A DNA stretch of 64,000 bases from Thalia democratica (GCA_965202585.1 OZ241826.1:42284001-42348000), one strand, 5' to 3'; counted from the first letter of the stretch, positions 31,801 to 64,000 are shown. A program made the numbers and translations. The notes: generated from the sequence alone by a model not told the origin.

Positions 31801-32161
31801 AAAATCACACGGCTGGAAAGAATTATAATCATGACAGCAAACAAACCGTAAGCAATTATCTCGATTTCGAACGGTGAGGGATGGTACAGTGTTCGCGAAA
31901 CAAATGCAAATGTTTAAATTTAAACTGATTTTTAGCAACTGCAGCATCCAAACTCGATTATGCGAGTTTACTAAATACCGCTAATTCGATCTTACGGCGA
32001 ATCTGCGATTTTTCACGCTCTTAATTCGCTCAGCAGCTAACTACCGTCGTATTTCGCGGTGGTCCGAACCTCAAATGAAATTAATTGCAAATCGCCGTGA
32101 CCGCTCTCAATCAAAATTTTTATTTCATCTCGTGATAATTTACGGAAACTAGCCGCCCTCC

Positions 32162-32250
32162 TTGGCAACCAGCTGTTGCTAGCAACCGCCCCGTCGCTTT
32201 CTGGTTGCGAGCGATGACGCGGTTGTCAGGTTTCTGGTTGCCTGGCGACC
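32162..32250. promoter_or_regulatory. Candidate RFX X-box cluster upstream of Otx-A
   Basis: TTGGCAACC (32162), the perfect palindrome GTTGCTAGCAAC (32175-32186) and GGTTGCCTGGCGACC (32236-32250) in a CpG-rich island. Confidence 0.5.
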
Positions 32251-41200: not shown

Positions 41201-41607
41201 AATTAATAAATTGGGCAAAACAGAGCAGGTTGCAGAACAAAAGGCCTGGCTGTCAAATGAAGTACAAATATAGCGCAATTATCACGAAATTTCAGTTGTA
41301 TCTGTCAATCACCTTGTAATTATGTCTCTTGTTAGGAAAAACTCACTGCGAATTCTCCTCTGAAAACATTGTAGTTACATTTCCACAACAAACAGTTTAA
41401 ACTTTAAAAGTTGCTGTTTAATTTTTGTTCCGAGTAACAATTTTATTTAAAACTAAAGGGCTTGTTTACAATATATGTTTATGTACGTTTTAATTTCTCA
41501 TTGTGTTAATTTAAAACCACACAAATAAAACTTTATATTTGAAATTTTCCTTATAAATTAAAATTGAAAACTACTCACAAATTTACATTAAATTTAACAA
41601 TCAAACC

Positions 41608-41863
41608 TAGGGGTGGGCAGCGTTTTAAGTCAGCGGGCCAGATGTGGAAAAGCTTAATCTTTGGCGAGCAGGATCATTTTAATTTAATTTACGAAAATTG
41701 CTTAACTATCCAATTAATTTCGAAAAAAAAAATTAACTCTAAGTGAATTTTTTACCATGTTTTAAATTTTAATAAATAATAGTATAAGTTAGAAAAACTT
41801 GTTTATCTGGCCAGGTTAAAATGTTTACCAGCCTTAGTTTTACCTTTTGTCGGCACACTCCTA
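41608..41863. mobile_element. Degenerate 256-bp hAT-like MITE
   Basis: Left end TAGGGGTGGGCAG; the right end reverse-complements to TAGGAGTGTGCCG. Subterminal inverted GGCCAGAT (41636-41643) and ATCTGGCC (41805-41812). The 8-bp flanks atcaaacc and gtctaacc match 6/8, consistent with an aged hAT target-site duplication. Confidence 0.6.
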
Positions 41864-42885
41864 GTCTAACCTGATAATTACCTGGATGCGTTTCTCCTGT
41901 GTGATTTTTTTTTAATTCACAAAAGTTACTCAACTGTTCAATTGATTTCGGAAAAATTATTAATTCTATGCGACTCTATTTTTACTATGATTTAAATCTC
42001 TCGTAAACTGTAACTAAGTTTTTCTTTGCTCTTTGTTTTTAATTTCATAGTACCTAGTGTAAGTTTAAAAGATGGTTTATCGGAATGGGTTTTATGTTTT
42101 CGCGGGATGTATATTACCTACTCCTAATCTAAATAAATATAATGTTTATTTACTACTATGAAAATCAATAAACAACTTTAAATCATCTTTTAAATCTTCA
42201 AATAAGCATAATGTTAACCTCATTTTACAAAAAATGTAATACATATTTTTAATAATTTTATTTAAAAGAAGAAGAGCAATTTTTTTTTTGCTTCAATTTT
42301 ATTTTCATATATGACTTTTATCCATGATAAATGCAAACGATTATTAAAAGTATAGAAAAAGAACAAAATAAATTTTAAATAGGAAGTACTTTTAATGTTT
42401 TAAAACTAAATTTGCTCAAAAATATTATTTTCTAAAAGTCACCGGGCATAGTTTTACTTAAAAAGAAATTAGTGAACAATTACTACTAAGTTCAATAAAA
42501 CGGACAGATACGAAAAATAGAACTTTACAAAAACTCACACAAAAATACAAGGTCTAAAAACAAGAAAAATGTATAAAAAATTGCACGGTAAGGCTTATTA
42601 TAAAATCAAATTGAAAATAGAAAAGCCAGTCATACGTTGCGGAAACTTCGTAGCTTGTGAACGGACTACATAAAATTTATTTAAGTTCTTCAATAAAAAC
42701 TTAAATAAATATTTACTGCTCTTTTATTCTCTACTACTTAAATAAAACTGAAAAATTAAAAACATATCTATGTACTAAAAATGGATAAAAATATTAAAAG
42801 TTTATAACTATGTGGGCAAGTATTTCTGGCTTTTGAATTGAAAGCAGCTGATTGGCTCGTTGGCTGATCACGTGGTGTGACCTAA

Positions 42886-42976
42886 TTACATGATGACGCA
42901 GTTCTCCTTTCCCGCCTCCATGTCCATTATGTCCTGGTTGATCATTCCCTGGATGTGTTCTTCCAATTCTGCAGCT
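42886..42976 (-). CDS. ehbp1: Ehbp1-like last coding exon L (AAELEEHIQGMINQDIMDMEAGKENCVIM*) with CaaX box
   Basis: attatcag|A GCT...TGC GTC ATC ATG TAA; stop at 42886-42888; AATAAA on the minus strand at 42723-42728 and 42676-42681. Confidence 0.88.
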
Positions 42977-45900
42977 CTGATAATATTGACAAAATTAATA
43001 AAAACAAATAGCTACTTTAAAATTTCAGCGTATGCCTAATACTTTAATGTTTTTAACAAACTCGCTCTTTTTAAATTCGCTTAAAACGTGATACTAGTTA
43101 TGAAAATAGGTATAAGAAGTATGTTATATGTGAACTACTCTGGATTGGTCAAAATTTCCGAAGAATAATTAAATTACTATAATTTTTAGTTAAAAAAATA
43201 TTAAAAGAAAAAAACCTGAATCTCAAACAAGTATAAAAAAAACTAAATTAAATATCAAGACTAATCTAACCAAAATTATTTTTTTTATTAAAAGCGCAAT
43301 TAAATCGATATTATAGAAACTGACTCTTCCTCCTTCTCGTCGATCCGGTGTATTATTTCGTTCTTCTCGTTGACAAGCGCGATCTTCTTCATGATGAGCT
43401 CCTCCTCCTTCTGCTTCATCGCGTCGCTTTTCATGTGCTCTGTGTGTATTGAGGTACGATAATAAAAAGTATTTGAAAAAATTTTGACGAAATGATGTAA
43501 AATAAAAAAACGGAATACAATTACCATTTGTTACAGGTTTTTGCTGTTCTAAGTCAATTTCATTATTGCAGCAAGATGACTAAATGGAATTAAAATTAAT
43601 CTCACAAGTGATACTGTTATTAAAAAAAAATTATTATACATAAACAAAAGATTTATTCAACAAAATCATATATAATGTGACTTTTTCGACCTACTTTACT
43701 CACTTGAAAAAATAAAAAAACAAAAATTTAAAAAATATATAGTCACTAAGCAATCTAAACAAAATTACAAGCGTTCAATAGTGTGTATGTTATGAAACAA
43801 CATTTTATATTTTCAATGACTTCACGGAATTGACGCTAGTCATAAACTGGAATATCACCCAATAAATCTAAAGAAGTTTTAATGTAAGTGTCAAAATATA
43901 AATGACGCAAATAAACAGTACCAGTACCTGTAAAATGAAGTATCATTTAATTAAATTGTTTGTTTTCCTGTGGCTTTGAAGTATAAACTCAATTAATATA
44001 ATTAATGTGCATAAAAGTTACAGTTTTTTTGTTCTATATAAAAGTTTTTAGACCTTTAATATTATAAAAACTCACTCTATGACGAAATGTTACTTTTTAA
44101 ACATCAATTAAAACCACACCTCAAGATATATAAACTTTTTAGCAAATATTCTAACAAATTTCAAACTCCTTACTTTTGTCGAACTATAATAAAGATATGA
44201 CTAAACATACTAAAAATCAACCTTTAAAAACTTATTGGAATACCAAGACACTTTTAGTCGTAATTTAAAGCACGAAAACATTTAAACCTGTACAAAATTG
44301 AGAGATTTTCTAATTAACCATAGCAACTTAAAAGTACTAAAACCCTCTATCGTTCAAAGAAAGCCGCGTGCAAACCAAATCTTTCTGAAATTCAAAGCAA
44401 AACACAAAGTTCCGGTGTAATTACAAAATATGAATTAATTGCAAATCAACATATTGCAGGTGCTTACGGTGACCACCCTGTGTTGCGACTAGCAGCTGTT
44501 TAATCGATTACTTATAATTGACCTTGATCGTCAATATCAACCCCACTAATCAAATGTGCTTCCGCGTCTAGTCACTAGTTTCAAAAGTCGCGCATTTTTG
44601 ATGCAATTCGTTTTGTAATAAAAACTGAAATACTGAGTTGCATTTGTTTAGCATAGACATTACAGTTTATTTTTAATCAGAGCAAAGGTGTCATATCGGT
44701 TGTTGTGAATGAAATAAAAAGAAGAAAGTAAATATAAGCTAATATAGGTATAATGTAAGTATAAGTTTATAAAGAATTTAAGTTTTTTTTTTTGTGAAAA
44801 AAAATATTTTTATATCAGAAATAATAATTTTGTTTTGAAGCAACAAAATCAAACCTTTCAAAACTGCTAACAATTATTAAAAATTGTAAAAGTTATTGAT
44901 TTATGCTAAAAAGAGCTAATTTATAAAATCAAAAAAATATTGAACATTTTTTTATTAATTACGATTTTACATTAAATATAACTAGTTACGGACTTTTAAA
45001 AAAAATTTATTTCACGGTTAAAAGTTAATTTTCCGTCTAACAACCATTGCAAAATTTAGTTAATTTAACTTTAACCTAGCCAATACATTATGCGATCTAT
45101 CTCTTTAATGCAGCAGTAGAATCTGAACATTTATGATTGAACAGGCAAAAATGTCCATTTATCCAACTAAAACACACAATGTAAAATGAAATAAAAGATT
45201 GTGAATCGAAATAGCAGGTGTATGGTTAAGGCCACCCAATGCAAATTGCGATATTATTGTGATTTATTAATGACATTGTCACGTAATACAGGTGCCTGCA
45301 CTATCAACAACTGAGATTCACACATAAATATTCATAAAAGAGCAAAATGCATTGTTTAATTTGTTTCGCGGCCAAAAACTTGAAATAGCTTAGTTATAAA
45401 CTTGTACACTTCTGTTTAAATTTTAACTTTGCATTCAAGTGGGCAAATAAGACTTATTTGCGTCAGAAAATGCATTAAAAACTGAACATCCACATATATT
45501 ATGTTTTCGCACAACATTGTTATCTTATTCTGGTACAGCTAACCAAAACAAAACTCAAAATGACATAAAGGTTATTAAATTGCACTTATCTGATCACAAA
45601 TGTTTTGTCAGAGTGTTTTTTAATTTAATTTGTTCAATTTAATACACCATGTTTCGTTATCTTCGCACAACGACGCTTTTAAACGTCAACAAACTTATTA
45701 AAACGCGGTTATCTGATCAAAAATGTTTTGTTAACGCGGGTAAGTAACATTTTGTTTAATTAACTCTTGAACTTTGCTAACATTTTAGTATTTTCACTCT
45801 CACAGAGAGTTTAATTAACTTTTGAATGGTAATATTTACGCCGTCAAAACTGTCATGTAAGCAGTGGTAATAAGTGTTACCGATTGTTATTCTGAAAACA

Positions 45901-48900
45901 AAAAAACTTAGTTTGCGAAATAACATCGGTAGCAAGCACGCTTTAATTATTTATTTTATTGTTTCAGCAGATTAAAACAACTTTTTCAGCGAGCGTATTT
46001 GTTGTGACTACCGGCAAATATAAGTTAAGCAAATTAATTAAGCTTCGTGTTTATTTGAAAACACGTTTTTAAATAAACCAACGAAACTGACCGGTTATTT
46101 TTAGACTTTTTTTGCTAACTTCGAATAAAAAGTAGCGGTCTGCATTAAATTTACAATTAAAACGACAGGCCGCTGCAGAATAACAATTAAATTGATTGAA
46201 ATTAACATTAATATCGTCTGCGCGAGCGCGACCGGAAACCTATGAAAGCGAAAAAAAAAAACTGCAATTAAAAATTTCAAAGTCGCCAAACCTTCAACTA
46301 TTTTTGGCCGAACAAAAAGTTGAAGGTAGCGAAATAAATCGGGGTTTCCGATCGCAACTGCCATCGAACGCGGAAGGAACCCCACACGCGCAAGCTGCGC
46401 AGGTGGCTACTACAGTTTGTTTTCAATTCCTCTTATAACATCTGTCGCACTTGTTAGATTGCGCAGGTCGCCACAACAAAGCGATCAAAAAAAGCTTTAA
46501 CGGCAACTGAATTTTTGCGCACAAAAACTACTACTGTGTGCAGTTTTTCTCGAGCGGCGCACTGAAAGGTCTGATCACCAATCAAAGATGACGTTTCATC
46601 GCGTCGGCGCTTCAATCATCGAGAAACAATACATATTCACAACACATGGAGAGACATGATGTAATTTAATTAACTTGGCATTCCAGTGTCTCAAATTGCC
46701 ACCGCAACGAAAACCCAACTTGAATTTCCAACCAAATACATCTCGAATCTCCAGTTCAGACTTGCAGGCGTCTGACAGTGGAAATTTCTCAATCGTTCTG
46801 AATGGCGAACTTGAATCGGGTGAAGTGCAGTTTCAATGGAGGCAGCAGCACAAGTAGGCAAGAGTGACCACTCAAAAAAACTGCAACTTTGCGCACCGAA
46901 CATTTTCTCAAAGCTGCAACAGCACAGAGATGTTTTCACTTGAAAGACAAGTGCTTTGGAAGCGAGCGATTTTCCACCGAATTGTTCTCAATGCGGATTG
47001 ACATTTAAACAATCTTCAAGTTAAATTTTGTTTGTTATTTTCAATGGAAACCATCTCAGTGATTAGACTTGTCGAGCTGTCATGACAAATTTGTAATTAT
47101 TGGATGATCCGAGCCGCTCCGTCAAACATTGTGACGCAACAGCAGTCGATTGTGACGTAAACAACAAATTATTGGATGAGAAGTTGAACAATTGACTTTC
47201 GCGTAACTCGCAAATCGTGTGTATGAGGTTTGTTGGAAATAACAAATCATCGATGTAAAAATTACCTTGAGAAAAGTAAAAAAAATTGAATAATAATCAA
47301 AAAAATAGTTCAGTGATATTAAGTTTTTTTAATAAAACTTGCTTGATTTAGCTTTATGGTGGTAAATTTGCATGCGAAATGAAAAAATTCCGTGCAAAAT
47401 TGAAACGTTACAAAGTTTTGAAGGAAATTTGAAAGAGATTAGTCACGCGCTTAATCTGCTAATTACAAATTTTGTTTACCGTTTGATTAATCGCACGGCC
47501 CAAATAAAAAGTTCAAATGACCCAACACCTTTTGTTTTTCCTTTCCTTGAAATTTTTGAATTTTTTCCTTTGCAGAGTGGGTTCAGAAATTGGTCGAAAC
47601 ACAATGCGAGAACAAAGCATTTAACAGATAAAAATCTTAAACAGAAAATCTAGATGAATTTGTTGTTAAAATGTTTCCCAAAACACCTTTGTCTTAAGAA
47701 ATTACGAAAAACCAAGGCATACTTTAGTATATGTTCATAAATATTCCGTTACAACTTAAAGTAAAAGTTGACAGCTTGACTACTACGTTTGGACAAAATT
47801 TACTATTTTATACTAAAGTACAACCGAAAAAAAAAACAATCATCTAAAAACTTAGTTTAAACTTTACAACTCATTGAGGCAAACTTAAGCGCGAGTATAT
47901 TCTCACACCGAATCTACCTTTCCGTGTGGATTTCCTTCAACAAACAACAAGTGAGTAGGAAAAATAACCTGAAAATCTGTCGAGAAACCAAAGTGGAAAA
48001 CACTGAAACTTTCACACACACATGTGATGGGAATTTTCAAAGAAGAGTCCCACGGTGTTGCAGCGGATTATCCTCGGTTTTGTTTTGAGAACATCTCCAC
48101 TGATCCCGCTAAGCTCCTCTAAACATAACTCGCTAATTGCCGCTCCAATCCAAACAAGACTCTCAATTCAAGTGAATTCAGAACAGTTACTTTTCACTCG
48201 CAATGTTAATAGTTTTAATTAAGATATTCATGTTTGTTTTTTTGTTTTATTTTATAATTTTTAGAGACAGATCAGAAAAGTAAATTTTCAAGGTACTGAA
48301 CTGTGCCTTTAAAACACTGAACTAAGTTTTCTTACTGAGCTACGAGGAAATTGCTAAAAAAATACAAGCACAAACAAAAAATAATACTATACTTCCTTAT
48401 TATTTTACAGACATCGTATTTTACATCATAATAATAATTAAAAATTTTCAAATAATAAGGATGACAATGTAAAAATAAACTAAAAAATTTAATAAATATT
48501 TTGTACACATCCTAAGCACGCTAATTTATGTTTCAAAAACACAAAAATTTTAACTTTGATGCCAAAAAGCCTGTACTTCGCAGGGGGTTATTGTGTGTAA
48601 AAATATTGACACTTTTCCAAGCCAGTCTTTCGAAGATATGTACAAAACAAAGGATTAATTGCTCGTTTGAGGCCGGAATTACGAACTAAAAAGTGTGTTG
48701 CCTGAGCTTAGTAAACTATGGTTTCTGTAATTCCATCAAATCCATTGTGTTTTAAATCGTAATGCTGATGATTTGACATAAAGATTAAACAGTGAATTTC
48801 GTGTTTTACAACGATTATCATTCTAATAATAGACTCACAAAAGACGCTTGTACCATTTACTAGAAGGTTTATTGAAGTACAAAAAGGTTTGGTTTTTAAT

Positions 48901-51900
48901 TGCGACTAAATTCAAAACACAGTAAAGCCTAAAGAGTCTAAAAACCAAGCTTGACAAAAAACTAATATTTTTCAAGATTTTCAGAGGTTTATTAAAAATG
49001 ACGCGTTGTGTTTCTTGCGTTTAAAAATGACGTGTTATGTAAACAAACTCAATTAACACGAGTTTTTCGATTACTATTGATTTTATATAAATTTCTACGT
49101 AGAGTCAAGTAAGCATGTAACAATGCATAGCACGAAGTAACGCAATAAAACTTTTCAGATTTCTATCAAGTGGATAATACAAAAGTCAAATTTAGTATTT
49201 AGCCAACAACTTGTGCCTGTCTCCAAAACTTTGCTTTCAAAAGCCGTTATTGTTGGCAGCTTTTTTATTTATCAAAGCAATAAAAGATCTGAGGAATTAA
49301 GCTGGGTAAAACGATTAACTTTTTCTTAATAAATAGCAGAAGACAACAATTACATCTTTTTTCTTGTAAGCGACAGCTGCTAGCAACTATTTTACTACTT
49401 AATTGATTTAGTGGATTAGGGGATTTGTAAACTTTTTGATCAGCTGTATCTGAACTTTAGCATCTGGATTTTTTGTCAGCAACAAAGACATGATTTATCA
49501 CATTTTGAGATCAAAGAAAAAAACTTTTATTCTTAACAAAGGCCACTCTCATTCCGTTTACAGAAAACCTGTGAAAAAAAAACTGAACAGCGTTTTGAGA
49601 AGGCCCACCTTTTCATAATTTTTCAAGGGGGCTAGCGTATCAAATCGGGTCTGAAAGTATAGCGACGCTGTGTTGCAGATGCTATTGATAAGCGGTGTTT
49701 AGTCAACACGACTGTAACACCTGCCGCGCTGTAACAAGTCGTGTTTCATCTCGAGAAAATTTCCTTTGAAACAAAACAACAAAAGTCACTTCTAAACCCG
49801 CACAAAAACAAATTTCTCAGGGATGAATTTTTTTGGTGATTTTTTTTTTTGAAAATAAAAGCGTGACCGTTTTAAATTAAAACAACCATCAGCAGCAGTT
49901 TTGTAAAGTTTCAACATTCGGCAGGGTCAAGGCGGGCTGCGCGGGCGGCGAAATGAAGAAGCTGATTTTAATTGGTTTGCAGCAGATAAACAGATGTAGA
50001 TGGCAGCGATACGAGCTAGTACCAAATGCAAGTAGAACAATCGAGCGCTAATTACACAAGGGTTTTGTACGTGTTGTTATAATACACAAGTCGTGACAAA
50101 AACAGAACAGAAGATTTATTGATGTGTGTTAAACATGGCTGAATTTATCGAGCTGTATTTTTTTCAGTTTTTTATAAACGGTTTATAGTTAAATTAAAAA
50201 AAAAAATCAACTTTTCATAGCTTGAAATCTTAGGTACTGAAGAAATTATTTGTAGAAATAGGAAATATATGAAACTTATAATCAAAACTAATCAAACCTT
50301 CGATGTTGGCAAACTTGTTGACTTTTCTTTCGATTTCTTCTATTTCATTGATAACTCGCTGTTCATCGTGGCTGTAAATTTAGTTGTCATTTAATATAAA
50401 GAAAATACATATAAACCAATTTGTTTTGTTTAACTTGTTTCCGTGGAGTAAGGCAAAAACTGGCTTTTATTTAACTTATAACAATACACTTATTTACAGT
50501 GTTAAAAAGTAAAATAGTAAAAGCCTAATAGTCTAGTATACATTTTAATCAGTAAATAACACAGCTTTCAGAAGTGGTCACAAAATTTGCATCGTTAAAA
50601 ATTTACAAAACCATAAATTCAAATTTTCGGAAACTTCTATTAATTACAACCCATTAAAACTTTAAATAACTGTATACACTACATATTTATACCACACAGC
50701 TTTTAAAAACCAATTAAGAATTAAGTTACTAAAGTACTTCGGGGTAAAATAACTTTCATGCGGGTTTTGTTTTGAATAATCTAAGATTAAAATCCCTACA
50801 AATCTTAGGAAGCTACAGCTTTGAAAGATAAATGAAAGTTAGGTTTTTAGCACTTACAGTAATGATTAATTATCAATTTATTGTATAAGGTTGGCAATGT
50901 GGTTTAAATACATTTGTTTTGAATTTTAATATACAAAACTTATAACAATAATTTCAAGTTTTTGAAAATCTTGAGTTTCCTCCATTTTATAATCTAAACT
51001 TTGTAATTAAAAACATAATGACGAACTTAAATCTTTAAGAGATTAAATGATAGAAGGCTTCATTGTTTATTAAAAAAAAACTTATCAAACATATCTAGGC
51101 TAAACAACAACAAACAAACTCTTATATAAATCAACAACATGCATTTGTTCACATAAAAGCCCTATTACAACACATAAAACAATAAATTTCAAATGGTAAC
51201 TGACGCCAAGCAAAGCTGATCCTGCTGTATGACCAGCCTGTTTTTCTTGTTGACTATCTGGATCCACTCCCTCGCCAGATCTTCCTCGCGCTGCTTCATC
51301 GCCTGATTGTTCCTTCCGAACACTGTTGATGAGGTTTAAGGTAAAAATAAATTTTTTGAAGTCTATGTTGATCTAGGTTGGTTCGGTGAAACAATTTTTT
51401 TATAAGTTTATCGACGTGTAATATTTTTATGTTTTATAAATAAATGTAAGTAAAGTTTGATGGAAAAAAAAATGGTTAAAATTCTAATTTTCTTCAAACA
51501 AAACGAATGTTATATGTTTAGTACTTATAACTCTTTACTAATAAGTTCTTAGACTTTTTTGAGGAAAAACCAATTTTGTTATGATTACTCAAGAGCACTA
51601 ACAGCGATTAAAAATAAGAAAATTAATTGATTTCACGGTTAATAAACTTTGCAATCAGAACAAGAAATCTTATAAAAAGTAATCTTGCTTTTATATATAT
51701 GAACCTTAGGTTAGTTATTGCTAATGAAGAAAATAAAAGTTCTTTGTTTTAAAATAAGAATAAACATCTTAGTAAGTACAAATTGTGAAGGACAAAATAT
51801 AAATCATTGTGTTTAAGTAATTTCAAATTTATTAATAAAATTGTCAAGTGTAATGTTCTTACCATACATAACACAAGTTTAAATATTTATCTAATTAAAT

Positions 51901-54900
51901 GTTTCTTATGCAAGTACTATTTTTTAATGACAACATAATTCAAATTATAAAATAGTTTTAAAAGTCGTTAAGTTTATTATTTGTTCAAAAAAATATTACC
52001 AAGTACTGTAATTCTTCAAAAACAAAGTCAAACAGTAATAATTCCAGATTAGGCGGGCCGGTCTGTCAACAAAAGTTTAAATGGGAAAGAACCCCGAGAA
52101 AATATTCAATTGAAATTCCAACAAAAGATCAAGTTGATCCCGCATAATCGCCGAGATCACCGCCGATTGTGACGTAACAAGGCCACTCGATACTTTGTGA
52201 CGTCATAAAGCCGACGTGTTAAAACTACCTGTTAGTGAAGCGGTAAGAAATTTTTTTAAACAATTTCTTTAAAACATCATTTTCACATACACATTTGCGC
52301 AGGTAGAATCTCGATTTTTAATTAGAGGAAATCAAGCTTAATTGCAACCAGTTCGATGAGAAAGTTGGAAGAAAATCAAATTAAAGATCTCCGATTGCAA
52401 GCGGAGCGTGTAAGAATTTAATATCAATTTGTAAATTAACTTGTCAGAGTAATTGAGTCAGCAGTTGCAAAAATCAACAGAAAACAATAATACCGGACGA
52501 GAAAACCGGCGATACTTCTGATCAAAGAAGCCTCGTTTGTTCAGCCTCGGTCAACTTAGAAAGCAATTAAAAACAAACGAGGTAGACGTTCAAAAACTAA
52601 GGGTTGGAAGTCGAAAACTACAAAGAGAAAGTCGTGACGTTATCTGGACGCCGGTAGATCGAGATTAAGTTATTATCCGTTCGAATACATCAAACCGTTG
52701 TTGTTGTAAGGATTTCAAAAGCAGATAAAAAATGTGAGCTTTTATTTTCAAAAATGCAAAGCCTATTGCGAGATTGAGAAGCGAGCCGTTTAATTAGGAT
52801 TAAAATATTTAAAATTATTAAATATTTAATTAAAGAGATTATTCACAAACTTATATTTGAAATTAAATCGCGTTATGAACATATACATGATCACCACAAT
52901 ACTACTTTAAAGTGTATTTTTTCAGCTGCCAATAAAATTTAATAAATTTAAAAACTGACAGTCATAAACAGTTTTAAAAAAATTATTTAAATCGTCCAAA
53001 AAAAAATATGAAAAAAACTATACAAGCTATTTCATGAATACCTTTTTACAACCGTTTGCAAAAAACTGACATCATAAATAATCTTACATCAGTCATTTTT
53101 AATTTCAGTCTAAATAAAGCACATAAAGTCTGCTCATTTTTGATTGAAGCCTTGTTATTAACACGAGGGCTGTTTGTTGTGGAAGCTTGTAATTTATATT
53201 GAGTCTGCTTCAAATAGACTGTGAGGTTTACCAACCAACTTACAACGAGTCAATCAGTTTTAATTTGAATGTGTATGCGTGCGGTGGTCAGTTTGGTTTG
53301 AATTGAAATGTTTGATTTGTTGTAAAAAAAATAAATTTTTTGAACCCAGCAAAGGTTTTTGGTTAGCCACAATGACAAATTTAGTAGTAAAACCAATGCG
53401 TTTGTATATTAGTATACATGTTTTTAGTTCGTAACTGTATTTACAAAACAGATCAGTTTGTAAAAGTAACTTAATAACTTACTTACAAAGTAAAAACATA
53501 AGATTTAAGCTTTTTGAATAACGCCACATTCGCAGAATAACGTTTAGCTATTATTTCCAAAACACACTTTTAAAACTAACAAATTCTAATTGTTAATTAG
53601 TATTTTGCGGCTTTCAAAAGCGAACACTTTGACACTGAAGGTTGCTATTTTTACACTCGTGAAATATACAAACACCGATACAGAAGTGTTTTGTGTTGGC
53701 ACTATTGAGTGGCACTTACTGTCGCCCGCGTGTCTGCACGTTGAAACCCATCAACGGCCCTCAATGCTAACAACTACTTGCACGAATAACTGAAGCAAAT
53801 AAAAAAATTGTACACAGTCTTTCTCTTGAAGCTTCAACCAGACTATCAAAGCATCAAAGCTCAACATTTTAAACTGCTTAAAAAAGCCCTTTAGAGTTTA
53901 AATCAGCTGTTAGTTAAATTTAAAGCACGAGCCGCTCGAATGTACCAAGTTCAAATGGATTACAACGCGCACAGATAACTTATCTGCGGGATGAGAACTG
54001 AACTACATTCGTAATCCACCGTCGAATCCACTTTCAACTGCAAACGCGACGAGATAATATTTCTAAGCCAGGCATTAGCGCGGGGCCGGGCGTTAGAAAA
54101 ACGAGCGGATCCGGCGAAAAGGCGCGAAAATCCGGGGCTGCAAGGGGATGATGCCGTGGCAACCATCTACTTTGGGGGGAGATGAGCATAAGGGTCGCGT
54201 GTGATAATCCCGCACATTGAAATCCCACCATACTGATGCGAGTGCAGGGGATTATAGAGGGCGGCACATAAGGCAGATATGCACAAGCAAATAGGATTAG
54301 TTGTTGTGAGCATTATACATCTCTCTCTCTGTATAATATATGCGCAGTGCGAAGCTTTCGCGATGAATGAAAACTGAAAAGGATTAGCGCTTTCAAAGCG
54401 TAACGCAGAAGCTTTCCAACCTTTTTGAGTTTTTCGTTTTGCACACGCCATCGATATGTATGGATTTTTAAGCATATTTTGTTGCAGCGCATTGGGGGTT
54501 GAAGTAATGTAAACTTCTGCCAGCTCAAGGAAACGTTTTTTTTTTTTCACTGAAAGAGTTTTTGTAAAATTTTCTAATGGTAAACAATTTACAGTTTTAT
54601 GAAATTATTAAAGAATCCATTTACTGGCGATACTTATACTTATAAAATACTAATATTTATTTATCTATATATAGCAATGGTAAACTTCATAAAAAAAACT
54701 TCAAGAGGTAACTTCGTAGAAAACACTCTATACAGTGCAAATAAGTATTTAGAGACAGAGCACTTGAGAACGAGTTTCAACTATAAAAAGTATTACGGCA
54801 CCGAGTTATAAATAAACATTTAATATAAAATTTCCAACAATACACACAAGCCAATTACGCTCAGGGCGGCAGTTGCAAGCCAGCCCCGTAACCGGCTTAA

Positions 54901-57900
54901 GCCCGGCCCCGAAGCACAAATATGAAAGAAATCGAAAGTGGATTAACACGACCACATAACCGACGCTATGGGTGGTCTCCATGACGTAACACAGAAGTAT
55001 TGTGACGTCACGTTTGTTAAGGGTTGTGGTGGCGAATCGGATTATAAAAATAGACTGGTAATTAATGGACGTGAAAAACGAAAATTTTCTTATACATATG
55101 CTCCAAACCCTGCCCGAAAGCTGTCCGGCAGTTCATAGAAAGTCGATTGAATGGAAAAGTATGAATGAAACCCGTTAAGGATTAAAGCTAGTAATTTTGA
55201 TTGTTTGGAAAAAAATTATGATTTTCAATAAAGTAAGTTATTTATCATAGCTGAAAAGTAGAACTAAACGGGCGTGACAAGGTAAAAAATTTAAAGGCAA
55301 AAAAAAACTAAATTGGTGCTTAAAATAAATTTCAAACAATTTGCAACTCGAAGCACAAAAGAAAACACTCACAAAAGTCAACGCACTGATGTGTGTGGTG
55401 AAAAAATTTGAAAATTGCGACAGGCAATTTGGGTCGAAATTGCGCGTCGTATAGCCGAAAAGTGGGGGCCATTTAGGGATTTGGTTGGCGAGATGGCAAA
55501 TTGAAAAATTCTGCACGAAAGTCACGACACCGTGGGCACGCAAGCCGTAAATTGCAGCGAAAACAATTGTTTGCGACGTGATGGGGATTATAGGGCAGTG
55601 GCAATTTGCAGTTACTGTTACGAAAATGATAAAGTTTGTTTGTTTGAAAGCGTGGTGAGGTAATGGCAAATCATGCTTTTTGTGAAAAGTGCTGAGATAT
55701 TGTAAGTTGAGATTTTTCAATGTTTTTTAGTTGAAATACAATGGCTTTTTGTTGCGCAGTTTTTATGTTAGAAAACATACAAGTAAAGTTTTATTTGAAT
55801 ATTTGATTTTGTTTCAATAAAGCTGCTTACACAAAACTTGACCAGCAAACACTTCTCGCCGTACAATAGGAAAATAACATATAAAACATTAAAAGCTTGT
55901 TTTATATCGTTGAATTATATATATACATACATATTTTATTAGTGTTTATTAGTATGGAGTATGTAGGTTATCAATTTTCAATGTTTTTACATATTTGTTT
56001 TTCTGTTCATACTTTATTTTACTTTTATTTTCTTATAAATGTCATTACTTGTAAAACTTAAAAACGTCTAATTCAAAACTAAAAAATTAATAAGTATTAC
56101 TTAAGAGTATACTTACTTATAGATAACTATATAACAGCTATTTCAAACTCTTAAAATATTAACTTAACTAATAGAGAGCTTTAAAAGCGTGAGGTAAAAT
56201 TACAAAGCAGATTGCGTAGATTAAGTAATAAGCGGTTATATACTTTCTTAGCTTAACTTATACGTTATAAATTAGATTTAAAACAGCTTATAAATACAAA
56301 ACGCATTAAAAAGCTTTATGCCTGGCTTTTGAAGAAAAAATCTTTCTATGATTGTACGCCACTTAGCGGTTAATAAATTTTACGCCAAGTTTGTATTTAA
56401 TGTTATTATATTAAAAATAAAAAATCAAACTTGCAATTTAGCTGTTTGACAAAGAATTAAATAATAATCAAAGTTTTTTAAATATCCTTGAGTAAGTTTT
56501 AAAAAATAAATCTGTTATGAAGAAGATTCGAAAAAAAGTTTCCTTAATTCTAGATAAAAAAAAAACTAAGCTAGCTCAACAAAAAACTATCTTAAAGATC
56601 TTTAACAGAAGTAATAAACTGAAACAAACTTTTTGGTTGTTTTATTTGCTGCAGTTCCATTTGAACCTCGGCAGACCTTTCTTCTATTTCTTGAAGTTCG
56701 TTGTCTAACTTCTGTTGCTGGGCTTCCAACTGTAAATTATTAATACTTGATAAATATGTAAAAACTAACCAAATGATTATTCAAAAAATTCACAACTAAC
56801 AACACAAAAGAATATCAGCCGTTTGACAAACAGGGTCTTTTATAAAAATAAACTGAAATTTAGTACCATAAAACTTTAAAGACATATAAAAACGGTATCT
56901 TCAACAAAATATTATTCACGCACAGCAGCAACGGGAGTGATGTCGATGTTGGCCTCGTCCTCCATGATTTCCTCCGCGTTCTCGATACCCATGATCCTGC
57001 TCAGCCTCTTCACCAGGTTGGCGTCAGCTTGCGACAGCGGCCTCGATTTACGGACGCTTCCTGTCACAACCGAACATCAGTTATCGGGTGTTGTAAACAA
57101 GCGTGGCAGTGTTGATGGTTTTTATTATTTTACGTATAATAAAAAACTGTTAAAAGGCCATAATAAACTAGTTTTAATTATGCATTTAATATTTTGTATT
57201 CCGTAGAAAAATAACTAATTTACGTATTTGTTTATTTTTTAAGTCCACATTAGGGTGCATCTGTTGCCCTAATGTTGCCCTAACCTTAGAAATTCGCTTA
57301 GTAAAATTTTTTGACGTTGGAAAATCACATAAATAGACAGCACAAAAAAATAGCTTCCTAGCTTTAAGCCTGTTGGAGCAAACTACTTTTGAAAATAGTT
57401 TTAAAAAAATTAGAAATTAAAAAATTTAAAAAAATAAAAAGTAACTTAGTTTTTTTGTTATTTTTGCATAAAATTTTTAATTTATTTTACAATTTTGTTT
57501 ATACAAAATTTTCTAAATATTGCAAGGAACATTTCCTAACCGTTTAAGGAAACTATCTCAAAAAATGTAGGAGAAAATATTTTTTTAGTGAAATAGTCAT
57601 CTTTCCTCTTTTTAAATATACCGATATAAAGCAAAATGTTCAAAAGTAGTTTGCTCCAACAGGCTTAGAGCTAAGAAAATATTTTTTTGTGCTTTTTTAT
57701 GTGATTTCCAAACGTCAAAAAACTTTACTAAGCGAAATTCTAAAATTTTCATTTTCGAGGGACAACATATGCTCCCTAGTACACATAAATGTGCCTTTAC
57801 TTTTTATTTGCAATGTAAATTTTTGAAAATGGTAATAAATATCTAAATATGATTAATTATTATTTCAATGTTTATAAACACTACAAAATAATTATTTTTT

Positions 57901-60900
57901 AGAAGCATTATTTACAAAATTTTCCAAATAAAACATAAACTCAAAAAATCCATGCCAAAATCAAGTTTGACTAAAACTGTAAAAATAGATTGAAAAACAC
58001 TTTTCAGTATTAAAACAAAGCAAAAAAAAAGCTTTCTTTTAAGCATTTAAATAGTTAAACTAAGTTGATAAGTAAATGAAAATAATCTTACTCATTCTTG
58101 GAAGTTTGTCTTCAAATTCAGTATGGACCGGATGATTTCTCATCACAACTTCTGTACCATGCAAAATAATATCAATTAAACGAAACAGCAAAAAATTAAA
58201 TTAAAAAACTTATTGCATGATTTGTAGTTATTATTGCTCAAACTGAAAATAAAAATGATAAATAAGAATTTTTTTAAGTATCATGTGATGTTAAGACATA
58301 TAATAAATAAGTTTAAAACTAAACAGTCATTATATTTAAAAACATAAATAAACTTTAACTTTACTTTAAATTTACACAGTATATTAATAAATGGCAAATA
58401 CAGTTTTTTATTTAATCAAACAATGTAAACGAAATACTATAAATCTAAGAATACAAAAATCATATAAAATTCTGAAACATGCATTTTAAAATTTAACTAC
58501 TTTTGTTTAATTTTCATACTAATTTACTGAAATTTCAAAAACAGCTTTAAACATTATGATTGCTAAAACAGTGCGTATTTTCTTTTGAAAAGTTATAAGT
58601 TTTTATTGATGATGATAAATCTCGGAGGAATATAGTCTAAAGTGGAAAATTACTTTTCTACTTAATTCTAATGTTTAACTCTTTTTATTTTCAAAATAAT
58701 ATTTAATTTTTTTTAAAAACATGTAAACAGCCACACCAAAACTGACCAATTTAGTATTCAAACTTAATTAAAAATTGAAAATCTCAGTTTTATTTGTTAT
58801 AAATACAATGGAAACTAATACAGGGGAGGAAATACGCTTAAACAGCAAGAGCGAGAACAATTAGCAACTGAAACAGAGTTAAGAGCTTGCTTGACGGCAA
58901 AACACAACAAGTTGTAAAGCCATACAGCTGTAAGGCTTAACGTTTTATTTAAAAAAAATTACAAAAAAGCCCTCAATTCTTATACAGGTGCAAAGTGTGT
59001 CGGATCGATTTTGTTTATATGAAAAGTGAAAGGGGGTCTGTTTCAGCGGGGTTTGGTCAACAAAAGCGAAATCGATTACCGACCCGCTTCCATGCTTAAT
59101 GTGGTTAATACGAATAGTCTGCTTGCTATAATTAGTCTGAAAAGTTGCTCTTTTCACAGCTTGTCAATCACTCACACACACACACACAGTGAGAGGTGTT
59201 AGTTTTTTGTTGCCGTCGATAATCGCGCTTCCTCGTTTCAGATTGCAATCTAATTAAACTTGAAATCGAGCGGCGAGATTACCATCGTAATTTACGGTGT
59301 TGTAAACAAATTTGATTTCGATAGTGTTAATTTTGATCATGCACAAGTTGCTATGCAAACTTATCGCCATCAATAAGAAGCATTGTTAGCAGTTTTAGAT
59401 TATTTTTCCAGTAAACAAGCGAATTTCAAAGTAAGTGATTAATAAAACACTAAATTGCACACATTTCTTAAATCAACAGATTCAAAAAAGTACTTAAAAA
59501 CTAATTCAAAAATGCTTAAAAGTTTCCCGATCAAATAAACTTTTAATTTGACTACTAAATTCATGCAGTAAATGTTTCACAAATCACTTCATGCACCGCA
59601 AATTGTATGCGAACCAATGAGAAAGCAGCACACAAACTAATTTCTACTCAAATTCAAAACCTTCTTCTTCGGGTATGGCGAGCTGCTGCGGAGCTCTCTT
59701 CTTCCTCCGCATCTTCACCTGGATCTTCTTGTCCTCCACGTTGAACTCCTGCACCTCCCCGTCCGAATCGTCCTTCAGGTCGATCATGTCCTTCGTCACC
59801 TTGTACGCAGCTTCTCCCGACTGCAAGGCGTCTGCCGCTTCAACCTTTGGAGCTTCTTCTGCTGCTGGTTCTTCCCTGGTTGGCGAGGCTTCCGCTTCAA
59901 CCGTTCCTTCTTCTGTTGCTTCAACTGGCGTGCTGCTACCTGCAGACGAGCATACAGCTTCTTGTACTTCTTTTATTGGTACTGCTTCACAAACTGCTTG
60001 CTGTTCTGCTATTGAAGCCGGTTCTGCTTCGCTTGGTACCGTTTCAGTTTCAACTGTTAATTTTGATAGGTCGCTTGCATCATCCACGCTTGCATCAGTG
60101 TTTTCAACTTTTTCCTCTATTTCAACTATTTCTTTTTCTTCTATGATTGTTATATTGCATTCAGCTTCCGATTGAGGTTCGTCTGCTTGTTCAGAGTTTA
60201 CAGAGCTTCTGTTGCTTACACCGGCTTGCATTGCTGTATGGTCATCGTCAGTTTCCACTGTTGTGTTCTCTAACGGTTTTTCGGACGGTTCTTCCTTGAA
60301 AGTAACAATTTCTTTAGCAGTTTCAATGTTTAAACTATCCAACACGTCATTATTTTGTGCTTCTGTATTCTCGTCGGCAATTTCTGTATCTGAGTCGTCA
60401 GCTTTTGCATCTGATGTAACCCAAGGTTCTTGTTTAGCAACTTCAGTACCTTCAACGCTCGCATTTTCATCCAAGCTTTCAATTTCGTTTCCACAGATTT
60501 CAACGACATCACCACTCGCCCTTTCTGATAAATTTTCCGATGAAGCTTCGCTGGCAAGATTATCATGTTCTTCGGTGTAAACGATTTCGCAAGGAGCTTC
60601 TGCTCGAAGCGAAGTCTCTGAAAGCTCCTCGTTCAAATCCGGTTCTGCTTCATCTGTTTGGTTCACAGACAGGACTTTATCTGCGAGCTCGGTCAGAGAG
60701 GAGTTTATGCTGAACACTTCCAGTATGGAATTGCTCCGGTTCAGATCTCGATTTACCGTCAAGTGTTCAACCGATTCGGTTTTTTGCACTGTTGAATCAT
60801 CCACGTTTTCTTCTACGACGTCGTTTTCAACAAGAGAATGCGCCGAAGACTTGTTGGAGACGCTCTCGAGAATGTTCAAGGCGTTCTTTTGCACGTAGTG

Positions 60901-63900
60901 AGCTTCAAGTATTTCCTCGATCTGATCGTTGGAAACCGAGTTCCTGTTGCTTTTCTCATCAACCTCTGACGCGGTGGCTTGCGAATCCGACTCGAACTCT
61001 TTGCACACCGCCTCCATTTCGCTTATGACGTCATCGCAAGTTAATATTTCCGATGATTTCTCATCACTGACAATCGCATCAGAAGCACTTAATTCAACTT
61101 GCGTGTCGAGCAAAGTTTCGACGCTGTTTTCAATTTCCAAATCTTGGCTGGGAATTGCAACGTGGTCGGGTGACGTTTCACTTTTGAATGGGTTTTCATG
61201 AGTGTCGTTGATTTCAGTTCCTTTCGATTGGCTCTTTACTGAACTTTCGTCGTCAGAAATGTCATCCATATAGGATGTAGCTGCTTTAACATGCTCAGTT
61301 TGACTTTTACACAAAAAATGCGAAAACGTAAAGAACACTTTTACAAACACGTTTATATCACTTTAAGTGTTACGCCAGTACATAAATACTCTTTTTGATG
61401 TGTAACAACATTTAGACGCTATATAATGAAACAAAAAGTAAAAAAAAACATACAAGTATTAACTTAACAACTTACTAGACTCAATTTTATTATCTGTAAA
61501 ATCTTCTTTTTCAATGGATTTCCTTGTTTGTGAAATCAACATGTGCGCTCTTTCTCTTATTTTTCTTTTTCTTTCCAGTTCCTAATTATTAAGTTATATT
61601 AATTTTACTACTGAGGTTAATACAAAAGCTTTATGATTGCAATTCTGTTTACTTTTTACAAAATTTTTTATAACACAAGTTTAATATTTCATAAAATTTT
61701 AAAATACATATATACCAAAAAATATTTAAAAAGATCATATAAAAAATTAGCTTTCAAAATTTATTTCAGGTAATAGGTCAGACATTATTAAGGTAAGAAA
61801 TAATAAAAAATTATCATAACTTTAAAATGTCTTTTAAAAACAAAAACATATTCACTACAATAGAAACAAAAACCTATAAGTTGGTGAAGCGAAAAATTTC
61901 TTAAATAAGTAACTTCATCTATCGACCAAAATGTTCGAAACCGTTACAAAACTTTAAACTGCTAAGAAAAAGTTGTTTCTTTTATGTCGTGTTTTTAATG
62001 AGACTAGTGTCAGGAATAATTTTATAAAAACAGTTCACAGAAATTTACACAAAGTTTTCACGAAATAAAATTATCATATCTTAAGTTTTCTTGACTTTGA
62101 CAGCCAAAATTTATCTGACGCTAATTGCCCGTAACAACCATCAAAGCGATTCTCAACTTCAAAACGTACCAAGCAGACCACCTATTTAAATAAATTAAAG
62201 AGAAAATATTTGAAATGTTCCTTGAAAACAATGTGCTTATTTTGGGAGCTATCGCGATGAAGGTGGCTTATCTGACGACTCTTTGCTTTGGCAGGGCCTT
62301 CAAAAGACCCGCGTTGCTTTTCCCGCGCAAACTCGAGTCGCGCGCACCGCGTCTCAGCAAACAAATTATGCGCTGTTGATTGCGACACTTCAGTGCACTT
62401 TCGCCGACTAATTGGTCACGTGATGTGCGAGCGAAAGCATCCGTGCCCAACTGTAAACATTCCGCGCAGATAAAAATGTATCCATTGTTTCAATTGTAAA
62501 CATTACTGTTGTTTATGGTGAATTCGCGTTAGTAAATGTTTCTAAGCTTAAAAAAAATACTACTATATATTTCATTTTTCAATATGCTAACGTTTACTTT
62601 GTTAGGCGAAACTTATAACAAAAAAATATATATAATCAAATTTAGATTTTAAAACTTTTTACCTCATCATCTATTTCTTCATTATTTTCCTGCAAAGCGT
62701 TAGCTTTCTTAGCTTTTTCTAGAAGTTCCATTATTTTTGATTTTTTTGTTCTTTCTCTTGCTGAGTCCTATAAAAAATATTTTCTTTTTCATAATTAATT
62801 AGATTTTTTAAGTGAAATACTTGTTATAAATATTAATTATAAAGTATTTTTAAATTGGTTTTAACACTGTACATTAATGACAAAACAATGACAAAACTAT
62901 CTCAAAACTTCTAATATGAGTACTTTAAAATATAGTTATCATAAACTAACAATCAAATTGTTCACAGTGTCATCAAACGAGGCATTGGAACAAGTCTCAT
63001 CATTTTTTGAGTTTTCTGAAATATTTTCTGATGATTCAGCGCTATGCACAGATATGGCTTCTTCATTCTTTATAAAATAAGTTTATATAACGTTTGTATG
63101 ATTTTAATTAAATTACGTAAAAAGAACGCTTAACAGCTATTTTCCACGTTTAACAATATCATTTTTATTCATTAACTTTTTTAAACAAAAGCAAAAAGTT
63201 TTTTACCAAGTATGTATTGTGAAAAAAAAACTTACATGGCCATTACGTATAATTGTGCAACTTTCTTTAACATCTAAATTCGTATCTTTATTAGAATCAT
63301 TGATACAAAACGTGCTTAAATTGTTATTTTCTAAATTAGTTTCACTAGTTAAATTATTGTTTTGTTTATCATCTAACTCTTCGTATATACCAACATCTTT
63401 TTCATTAGTTTCAGAAGTTTCAACGTAAGTTTTGGTTTCTTCACCACAATCACCCAGCTCTCTGTCACACTCTAGCGGTTGTACTTCTTCATTTTTATTT
63501 ATTGAAATACTTACAGATTTCAACTCCATACTGACTTCAAGCGGTTGAATTAATTTAATTTTTTCTACCGAAACTTTTTCAGGAATTTCAGGTTTTTCAG
63601 CGGGTTCCGCTAAAATTTCGGGTGGAGTGATTTTTTCAAGCAGATTTACGATATCAGGTTTTTCTTGAACTATTTCTTTATTATTGTATTCAATTTGTTC
63701 ATCAACTGCTGTCGACGGAGACTCTTCAACCTGGCTCTGTGACGTCACGTTCACGGGAGAAAGTCGTTGTGACGTCACTGGCCGGTCGTCGAACGAGTCG
63801 CACTCCTCCTCACTGCACTCGTACCGGAGGAGGGCCGAGTCGAGATCGCGCTCGAATATGTCGTCACAATCGTCGTCGTCATGGTTGCCAGGCAACGTGA

Positions 63901-64000
63901 GATCGGAGGACTGCTGCAGGGTGGCGGCGAGGAGTGACGGGATTCTGTTTGTGACGTCATTTTGAGGTGAATTGACGTCACCAGTTTCAGGTGGTTGACA
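42886..64000 (-). CDS. ehbp1: EH domain-binding protein 1 family gene (EHBP1-like), 3' portion; coding exons >64000-63236, 63067-62951, 62767-62663, 61581-61476, 61280-59661, 58151-58092, 57060-56924, 56729-56630, 51322-51205, 50371-50298, 43439-43325, 42976-42886
   Basis: All 12 exons join in one frame through GT-AG introns with matching phases. The protein contains ELERKRKIRERAHMLISQTR (compare the RERARxLIAEAR-type helix of EHBP1) and a bMERB-like C-terminus (LEAQQQKLDNELQEIEERSAEVQMEL...EEDLAREWIQIVNKKNRLV...EEELIMKKIALVNEKNEIIHRID). It ends in the CaaX box ENCVIM*, as EHBP1 ends in CaaX. The position directly upstream of Otx in the same orientation matches EHBP1-OTX1. NT-C2 and CH domains would lie outside the window. 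Confidence 0.88.
43325..43439 (-). CDS. ehbp1: Ehbp1-like exon K (bMERB: HMKSDAMKQKEEELIMKKIALVNEKNEIIHRIDEKEE)
   Basis: cacacag|AG...GA|gtcagt; 115 nt, phase 1-2. Confidence 0.88.
45506..45730. promoter_or_regulatory. GATA-site cluster within a degenerate tandem duplication (Ehbp1 intron J-K)
   Basis: TTATCT at 45520, 45586, 45657 and 45709; TTATCTGATCA(C/A)AAATGTTTTGT twice; TTCGCACAAC twice. Confidence 0.45.
50298..50371 (-). CDS. ehbp1: Ehbp1-like exon J (HDEQRVINEIEEIERKVNKFANIE)
   Basis: aatttacag|C...GAA G|gtttga; 74 nt, phase 2-1; exactly bridges the phase gap between exons I and K. Confidence 0.8.
51205..51322 (-). CDS. ehbp1: Ehbp1-like exon I (bMERB: FGRNNQAMKQREEDLAREWIQIVNKKNRLVIQQDQLCL)
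   Basis: atcaacag|TG...GC|gtcagt; 118 nt, phase 1-2; EW..+VNKKN motif of bMERB domains. Confidence 0.88.
53957..55590. promoter_or_regulatory. Candidate enhancer: cluster of 10 K50-homeodomain (GGATTA/TAATCC) sites in the Ehbp1 intron H-I
   Basis: Sites at 53957, 54012, 54205, 54249, 54294, 54381, 54940, 55039, 55179 and 55585 lie within the largest GC/CpG-rich island. Function is inferred. Confidence 0.55.
56630..56729 (-). CDS. ehbp1: Ehbp1-like exon H (bMERB helix 1: LEAQQQKLDNELQEIEERSAEVQMELQQIKQPK)
   Basis: atttacag|TTG...AAA A|gtttgt; 100 nt, phase 0-1. Confidence 0.8.
56924..57060 (-). CDS. ehbp1: Ehbp1-like exon G (SVRKSRPLSQADANLVKRLSRIMGIENAEEIMEDEANIDITPVAA)
   Basis: gtgacag|GA...GCT|gtgcgt; 137 nt, phase 1-0, GC-ending codons. 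Confidence 0.8.
57253..57776. mobile_element. 524-bp MITE-like non-autonomous DNA transposon with long terminal inverted repeats and TA flanks
   Basis: Termini ta|GGGTGCATCTGTTGCCCT and AGGGACAACATATGCTCCC|ta are imperfect inverted repeats. The inverted arms run about 140 bp and include a perfect 29-bp block (57365-57393 TAAGCCTGTTGGAGCAAACTACTTTTGAA versus 57639-57667). The core is AT-rich with no ORF. Confidence 0.85.
58092..58151 (-). CDS. ehbp1: Ehbp1-like exon F (VVMRNHPVHTEFEDKLPRM)
   Basis: ggtacag|AA...ATG A|gtaaga; 60 nt, phase 1-1. Confidence 0.65.
59173..59188. repeat. (CA)8 microsatellite
   Basis: cacacacacacacaca read directly. Confidence 0.9.
59661..61280 (-). CDS. ehbp1: Ehbp1-like exon E, 1620-nt Glu/Ser/Ala/Asp-rich exon
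   Basis: Lies within the 568-aa ORF 59644-61350. Acceptor ttaaagcag|CT and donor GAAG|gttttg give phase 1-1 and a length divisible by 3, matching both neighbours. Confidence 0.8.
61476..61581 (-). CDS. ehbp1: Ehbp1-like exon D (ELERKRKIRERAHMLISQTRKSIEKEDFTDNKIES)
   Basis: aattag|GAA...TCT A|gtaagt; 106 nt, phase 0-1; EHBP1-like RERA..LI motif. Confidence 0.75.
62663..62767 (-). CDS. ehbp1: Ehbp1-like exon C (DSARERTKKSKIMELLEKAKKANALQENNEEIDDE)
   Basis: ttttttatag|GAC...GAG|gtaaaa; 105 nt, phase 0-0, open. Confidence 0.7.
62951..63067 (-). CDS. ehbp1: Ehbp1-like exon B (NEEAISVHSAESSENISENSKNDETCSNASFDDTVNNLI)
   Basis: ttttataaag|AAT...ATT|gttagt; 117 nt, phase 0-0, open. Confidence 0.65.
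63236..64000 (-). CDS. ehbp1: Ehbp1-like exon A (5'-truncated by window edge), acidic low-complexity
   Basis: Frame open from the window end (CQPPETGDVNSPQNDVTNR...) to ...IIRNGH|gtaagt, a phase-0 donor. Confidence 0.8.

Follow-up and report, generated by a model that had tools for sequence, protein, structure and literature searches.

The head-patterning gene Otx and the trafficking gene Ehbp1 form a textbook example of a gene order maintained by enhancers that lie inside a neighboring gene, and in human EHBP1 sits 5′ of OTX1 in the same orientation. Here we examined a 64,000-nt stretch of the genome of the salp Thalia democratica (C1:42284001-42348000, hereafter the window), which holds the 3′ two-thirds of an Ehbp1 gene and, downstream of it, the start of a cluster of Otx genes. 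A hallmark of a genomic regulatory block (GRB) is that a developmental regulator stays next to an unrelated bystander gene across phyla, and both the adjacency and the orientation of Ehbp1 and Otx are seen in this stretch. The Otx-Ehbp1 block was published by Irimia et al. (2012, Genome Res; PMC3514665), who reported linkage of the two genes in animals ranging from placozoans to humans, with Drosophila melanogaster, Caenorhabditis elegans, and Nematostella vectensis as the only surveyed genomes that had lost it. By reporter and chromosome conformation capture (3C) assays, zebrafish ehbp1 introns were found to hold otx1b enhancers (PMC3514665), and in amphioxus contacts were observed between Otx and the Ehbp1 locus (Touceda-Suarez et al. 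2020, Molecular Biology and Evolution; PMC7530604). For T. democratica itself, two salp Otx in-paralogues, Otx.a and Otx.b, have been described from transcriptomes (PLoS Biol 2026; PMC12994792).

We conclude that the locus represents the published Otx-Ehbp1 GRB in a form specific to this lineage. The gene order, with all genes discussed here on the minus strand, is a GH18 gene, Ehbp1, Otx-A, Otx-B, and Otx-C, the last three forming a tandem trio. The Ehbp1 stop codon (42886-42888) and the Otx-A ATG (25621) are on the same strand, with the former upstream and a gap of 17,265 bp between them. An earlier sequence-only reading of this DNA (the original prediction) had placed Ehbp1 17.3 kb upstream of Otx-A in the same orientation and had called the pair a recognised ancient microsynteny; the distance and strand agree with our measurement, and the microsynteny is the one in the literature (PMC3514665, PMC7530604). 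Its claim that the block is retained in a tunicate stands insofar as the block is present here, but the retention is not new in kind, since Ciona, going by the figure legend, was already among the genomes surveyed by Irimia et al. (PMC3514665). Tunicates have scrambled most ancestral synteny, and each retained block is therefore a natural test of the embedded-enhancer model; the locus adds an example and leaves knowledge of the Otx-Ehbp1 block itself unchanged.

Where the original prediction had two Otx genes, homeobox matches gave three in tandem. Otx-A has four coding exons at 24078-25621, with a homeobox that runs from 25228 to 25082 and resumes from 24989 (Pfam Homeodomain; 76-100% identity by tblastn with protein P0002). 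Of Otx-B, the window includes the first coding exon, 382-483 (95% identity by tblastn with P0004), and the rest of the gene is to the left. Beyond the window, Otx homeoboxes were found at C1:42282884-42283030 and, for the third gene, Otx-C, at C1:42251487-42251633, some 32.5 kb before the window begins; the third homeobox is on the same strand and shows 92% identity with Otx-A across the 49-aa homeodomain exon. The window comes from an assembly of 802 Mb in 1833 contigs, the largest of which are the size of chromosomes (117 Mb for C1), and it contains no runs of N over its 64 kb. We added 40 kb on the right and 20 kb on the left, and coordinates above 64000 or below 1, marked ext, continue the window numbering past its ends.

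The reading that we favor, and that we consider probable on balance, is that GC-rich islands in the Ehbp1 introns are Otx cis-regulatory elements embedded in a bystander gene. Under this model, the islands would act on the Otx genes with Ehbp1 as a mere bystander, a break between Ehbp1 and Otx would sever Otx from its enhancers, and this would hold the pair together. The regulatory block would serve all three Otx paralogues. As far as can be judged from sequence, the locus agrees in all respects with the published model.

The islands of interest lie in two Ehbp1 introns on the side nearest Otx, intron H-I (51323-56629, GT..AG) and intron J-K (43440-50297). The lengths that had been predicted for them, 5307 nt and 6858 nt, proved exact. 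The splice sites of both were read, with the frame kept across J-K, and the junctions match P0173, a 413-aa protein carrying PF12130 from a metatranscriptome contig of a close relative (for J-K the junction is ...FANIE|EHMKSD). Intron H-I is further supported by a spliced 439-nt contig from run X6, in which the joint 51322/56630 skips 5307 nt with CT..AC ends and the loose ends continue into exons G and J. The remaining introns had been put at 168-1509 nt, and the verified lengths of 1509 (E-F), 1031, 194 (G-H), 833 (I-J), and 348 nt agree.

Within these two introns, we found islands at 46163-47256, 47861-48225, and 49515-50141 in J-K and at 51994-52259, 52439-52726, 53561-54544, 54705-55176, and 55314-55725 in H-I. 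The main J-K island is the first (46163-47256; GC 0.42, CpG observed/expected ratio (o/e) 1.27), the other two in that intron being smaller, and the last three in H-I make up an island block spanning 53561-55725. Across the locus, islands have a GC content of 0.38-0.48 in a background of 0.20-0.30, with a CpG o/e of 1.1-1.5 as compared with 1.11 window-wide. The high CpG density in the islands results from their GC content of 0.40-0.48. By the vertebrate definition of a CpG island (GC at least 0.5, o/e at least 0.6, and at least 200 bp in a CpG-depleted background), only 53901-54350 in the two introns comes near, with a mean GC of 0.48 as compared with 0.38-0.45 for the other islands. The "CpG-rich islands" of the original prediction are therefore real as GC-rich islands in both introns, but they are not CpG islands in the vertebrate sense, as the o/e is 1.11 for the window as a whole.

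To compare regions, we measured the island fraction, defined as the share of non-coding DNA in islands with GC of at least 0.40. This fraction is 24-26% in each of the three intergenic regions of the cluster (Otx-C to Otx-B, Otx-B to Otx-A, and Otx-A to Ehbp1), 31% in intron J-K, and 47.5% in intron H-I. It is 24% at 57-63 kb, falls to 2-7.5% in the 5′ Ehbp1 introns (64-76 kb), and is 2.7% at 77-90 kb. The 17.3-kb intergenic region between Ehbp1 and Otx-A (25634-42885), of which 25% is in GC-rich islands, includes examples at 27316-28289, 30261-30911, 31534-32449, and 37436-37905. CpG o/e follows a similar course. From -20 to 64 kb, all 4-kb windows have values of 0.75-1.37, whereas the values beyond that are 0.35-0.86, apart from one window at 1.07. 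The drop in CpG o/e falls at about 63500-64100, inside Ehbp1, and coincides with the collapse of island density. This drop, which the original prediction had no means of seeing as it falls at the window's end, may mark a germline methylation or chromatin boundary, and its position near 64 kb would place the end of the Otx regulatory and chromatin domain inside Ehbp1.

The densest island block also holds a cluster of Otx-type sites. Ten TAATCC/GGATTA sites, the K50 homeodomain/Otx type, lie at 53957-55590 in the H-I block as compared with a mean of 1.3, which ranks first among 90 6-mers of the same composition (the next best has five). Window-wide there are 35 TAATCC sites versus 22.2 +/- 4.1 expected, a number reached by none of 100 shuffles, and the H-I cluster accounts for most of this excess. 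The Otx paralogues may thus share an auto- or cross-regulatory element, for which the H-I island block would be the leading candidate.

These distributions bear on the alternative that survives best, namely that the islands are Ehbp1's own elements (intronic enhancers, alternative promoters, or splicing regulators) and that the adjacency of Ehbp1 and Otx was passively inherited. The islands do sit inside Ehbp1, which is expressed and correctly spliced in X6, and the haplotype constraint described below is silent on the target of the islands. However, island density in the two introns matches that between the Otx genes, whereas few islands are left in the 5′ introns and near the start of Ehbp1, and the CpG o/e domain runs on without a break from the Otx cluster to its end within Ehbp1. 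In addition, it is the densest block that holds the Otx-type site cluster, and the homologous zebrafish introns act on otx1b (PMC3514665). We therefore regard ownership of the islands by Ehbp1 as unlikely.

We next consider constraint on the islands, for which an alternative haplotype was available. The unplaced 34,508-bp contig C898 is the alternative haplotype of 21493-55654, at about 94% identity. The local substitution divergence between the two is as low as 0.4% and as high as 13%, a sign of very high heterozygosity, and because the locus is so polymorphic, constraint can be read from two haplotypes. In non-coding 200-bp windows, divergence decreases with GC content, being 6.9% where GC is below 0.25 and 2.4% where it is 0.40-0.45 (Spearman rho -0.53, P = 1e-12). 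Pooled divergence is 2.96% in islands and 5.31% in the rest (P = 2e-21), and within the two Ehbp1 introns it is 2.78% in islands and 4.20% elsewhere (P = 8e-5), a comparison between two haplotypes only. The same holds in the intergenic region between Ehbp1 and Otx-A (2.9% in islands versus 5.5% for the rest) and for the island at 46163-47256, which has diverged by 2.8% as compared with 3.9-4.5% for the rest of intron J-K. For Otx-A, the corresponding values are 5.7% at third codon positions and 1.3% at the other codon positions. The lower island divergence holds at G/C and A/T sites separately, with G/C sites more mutable overall, and islands also have fewer indels, by a factor of 2.5. In the 34-kb alignment, the two haplotypes are identical for longest at 54792-55449, a run of 658 bp in intron H-I that holds three of the TAATCC sites. 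All ten sites of the H-I cluster are identical in the haplotig (60 of 60 bases), which is not significant alone, as about 1.5 changes would be expected.

A further alternative is that the islands are non-functional by-products of composition, for example remnants of old mobile elements, GC-biased gene conversion tracts, or patches of low mutation rate. In its favor, the islands were defined by composition alone, and deep conservation was not seen in the comparison with Clavelina given below. However, the H-I and J-K island blocks, the two that we tested, are single-copy, each matching only itself and C898 in a search of the 802-Mb genome. The lower divergence at both G/C and A/T sites, together with fewer indels, is the opposite of what would be expected from gene-conversion hot spots. 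The islands are also distributed non-randomly, toward the Otx side of the locus, and a ~100-bp element kept only in the Otx cluster, described below, indicates that non-coding sequence was retained there after duplication. Taken together, we consider it very unlikely that the islands are by-products. It is just as improbable that transcribed features missing from the annotation, be they alternative exons of Ehbp1, a non-coding RNA, or a small nested gene, account for some of the islands. Open reading frames (ORFs) of 127-160 aa in 54167-55720 and low-depth unspliced X6 contigs at 52457-52806 might suggest this. However, the ORFs of the island block have no Pfam match, the window as a whole gave neither Rfam nor tRNA matches, the X6 contig splices exon H directly to exon I with no X6 contig on 53.6-55.7 kb, and P0173 contains no additional exon.

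Returning to the reading in which the islands are putative embedded Otx elements, several points weigh against it. First, the target of the candidate elements may be either Otx or Ehbp1. Second, smaller islands are also present in the short introns at 57-63 kb, so that loading covers the whole 3′ half of Ehbp1 and not strictly two introns. The original prediction, which had the two Otx-proximal introns loaded with islands, is upheld in that their density is at least that of the Otx intergenic regions and falls away in the 5′ introns, but the short introns at 57-63 kb are loaded too. Third, the comparisons of island density and CpG o/e are internal to 124 kb of the locus. Fourth, the constraint rests on two haplotypes plus metagenome variants and is at the level of polymorphism, and differences in coalescence time or mutation rate could contribute to it. 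Finally, within 10 kb on each side of the Clavelina Otx isoform X1 locus, we found no Ehbp1 exon, no called neighbor, and no shared non-coding similarity.

Sequencing runs supplied further variants of the locus. Contigs from run X3 are 99% identical over the whole stretch and are effectively the same species, and contigs from the marine metagenome runs X4 and X5 (2016 and 2024) are about 94-97% identical to 51150-56750; at these distances, neither set is a test of deep conservation. The X4 and X5 contigs show that this animal or a very close relative is abundant enough in plankton for assembly.

A broader proposal, which we put forward tentatively and hold to be possible but doubtful, is that Ehbp1 is split into two chromatin domains at a sharp boundary at about 63-64 kb. 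The Otx side, which is CpG-undepleted and island-dense, would be probably germline-unmethylated and of Polycomb type and would serve three Otx genes, including through a shared hub of Otx sites in H-I, and the 5′ half, which is CpG-depleted and island-poor, would be Ehbp1's alone. If this were true, the extent of a regulatory block could be read from sequence composition in tunicates.

The argument above depends on the gene being Ehbp1. Judging from its domains and closest matches, the gene is the single tunicate orthologue of vertebrate EHBP1/EHBP1L1, from before their duplication, and is not a MICAL. The exons for the CH and NT-C2 domains lie 5-13 kb past base 64000, and bMERB was detected in ORFs at 51189-51323 (exon I, Pfam E = 3.6e-6) and 43300-43527 (exon K, E = 6.7e-6). 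The CH exon is at ext 69244-69405, 5.2 kb past the window end (Pfam CH E = 3.4e-13), and when it was compared with solved structures, human EHBP1 (2d89 and 6zsh) came out on top at 66 bits, ahead of actinins (at most 60) and MICALs (at most 53). The best PDB matches of exons I and K are likewise human EHBP1 (6zsi and 6zsj, respectively), with MICAL1 weak for both. Exons I and K, which encode bMERB helices 2 and 3, are themselves alike (42% identity by tblastn), which fits the known internal repeat of bMERB.

A HMMER search of the full library with the CH exon returned many long proteins. Fifteen library proteins each gave three collinear matches on the locus (residues ~54-104 at ext 76.9 kb, CH at ext 69.4 kb, and bMERB at 51.3 or 43.4 kb), and the N-terminal match, on the NT-C2 side, has E = 3.5e-6 by tblastn. 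All six of the best-matching library proteins that were checked have an NT-C2, CH, and bMERB architecture, and two of the four looked up by name are EHBP1L1. The NT-C2 domain is present here as well, as a profile of 19 EHBP1-type N-termini matches consecutive minus-strand ORFs in order, first at ext 76920-76681 (profile positions 54-104, E = 2.4e-7) and then at ext 76526-76323 (profile positions 106-155, E = 0.0027). Exons 1 and 2 were placed by visual comparison alone, near ext 77700 and 77350, respectively, and exon 1 includes MFRSIKNKSKDAYKYKFTV. Pfam scans of single NT-C2 exons gave no match, and whole-genome Pfam searches with bMERB and NT-C2 did not list the Ehbp1 locus. The locus is absent from those lists because its exon pieces are too short or too divergent, and exon-level scans and a custom profile were required.

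The NT-C2 domain is lacking in MICAL and MICAL-L, whose marks are a LIM domain and, in MICALs, a FAD monooxygenase domain. On the minus strand across the Ehbp1 gene span, we found no LIM-type zinc-finger motif; the FAD domain was not specifically searched for. The spliced C-terminus is GKENCVIM, which ends in the CaaX box CVIM. The original prediction had named a grouping with MICAL or MICAL-L as the outcome that would overturn it, and we rejected that identity, as NT-C2 is present, the LIM motif was not found, the protein carries a CaaX box, and the CH and bMERB exons are closest to human EHBP1 among solved structures. A separate gene with CH and bMERB, presumably the genome's MICAL or MICAL-like gene, is at C5:24615090-24639928 on the plus strand.

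The exon structure of Ehbp1 was assembled from direct reading, P0173, and the X6 contig. P0173 is 87-100% identical to and collinear with exons E to L, and the junctions of these exons all match it; the structure between 63235 and 61331 (exons B-D) is outside this verified set. Exon A, an acidic linker at 63236-64000 with its start at about 64027 outside the window, was called from its ORF and splice signals, with the donor CAT|GTAAGT at 63236/63235. Exon E (59661-61330) is a large acidic disordered exon with a 568-aa ORF, the last 182 aa of which are 87% identical to P0173; its 3′ end, with the donor at 59661/59660, is verified, and the acceptor near 61330 is a predicted one. Exon F (58092-58151) has the P0173 junction ...PEEE|EVVMRNHPVHTEFEDKLPRM|R. 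Exon G (56924-57060) was mapped with P0173, and positions 56924 and 56729 are joined in one of the loose ends of the X6 contig. Exon H (56630-56729), which encodes bMERB helix 1, is 100% identical to P0173 and is in the X6 spliced contig, as is exon I (51205-51322), for which there is also the Pfam bMERB match. Exon J (50298-50371) was read directly and is supported by the other loose end of the X6 contig and by a P0173 junction. Exon K (43325-43439) was placed by Pfam bMERB and P0173 mapping, and exon L (42886-42976), the last, ends in the stop codon and is 100% identical to the P0173 C-terminus.

Upstream of Ehbp1 is an intronless GH18 gene encoding a di-N-acetylchitobiase-like protein of 377 aa (ext 78846-79976, minus strand), about 1.1 kb from the Ehbp1 start and with a CpG o/e of 0.45. 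Its best named homologues are in Ciona savignyi (48%), Phallusia (46%), and Clavelina (37%), with closer unnamed matches from marine metatranscriptomes. Together with the marine metagenome contigs of about 95% identity, these matches indicate a pelagic tunicate, probably a thaliacean, in line with the tunicate origin that the original prediction had called probable. The Clavelina homologue is in a tandem GH18 array that adjoins an NSUN2-type gene, not Ehbp1.

When the locus was compared with itself, the Ehbp1 intronic islands had no paralogous copies in other parts of the Otx cluster. The cluster does contain a different repeated sequence, a GC-rich element of about 100 bp with four copies, at 10047-10148, at 36624-36725 (in reverse orientation), at ext -11016..-10915, and at ext -5047..-4941. 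Two of the copies are 95% identical to each other and the others about 80%, and in a whole-genome search all copies fell within the Otx cluster or its haplotig. Each Otx gene has one copy some 10-20 kb upstream of it. This arrangement suggests that the element is an enhancer that was duplicated along with the Otx genes.

How this locus compares with known systems can be stated for each of its parts. As in vertebrate EHBP1/EHBP1L1, the protein has NT-C2, CH, and bMERB in the same order and a prenylation box at its C-terminus, CVIM here and CVLQ in human EHBP1. It differs in being encoded by one gene, in having very long acidic low-complexity linker exons, and in having NT-C2 exons that fall below Pfam detection when taken exon by exon. 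The islands resemble vertebrate CpG islands as local peaks of G+C and CpG density, but their background is not CpG-depleted (o/e of about 0.9-1.4 in this domain), the GC of most of them is 0.40-0.48 and so below 0.5, and they are not promoters. The Otx cluster shares with the salp Otx.a and Otx.b a lineage-specific duplication, and metatranscriptome relatives carry both an A-type (P0002) and B-type (P0004 and P0005) protein; the published account has two copies and no genomic context, whereas here three are in tandem behind Ehbp1 (PMC12994792). Finally, the locus shares with the published Otx-Ehbp1 GRB the same pair, with Ehbp1 5′ of Otx in the same orientation, and long bystander introns on the Otx side that are loaded with candidate regulatory DNA. 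The elements were picked here by GC content and haplotype constraint, in contrast to the cross-species conservation or chromatin marks used for the published block. The locus further differs from that block in having three tandem Otx genes downstream instead of one and in being compact, with introns of 5-7 kb and a gap of 17 kb, and with candidates of a few hundred bases and three Otx paralogues it is convenient for asking how embedded enhancers come to be shared or partitioned after tandem duplication.

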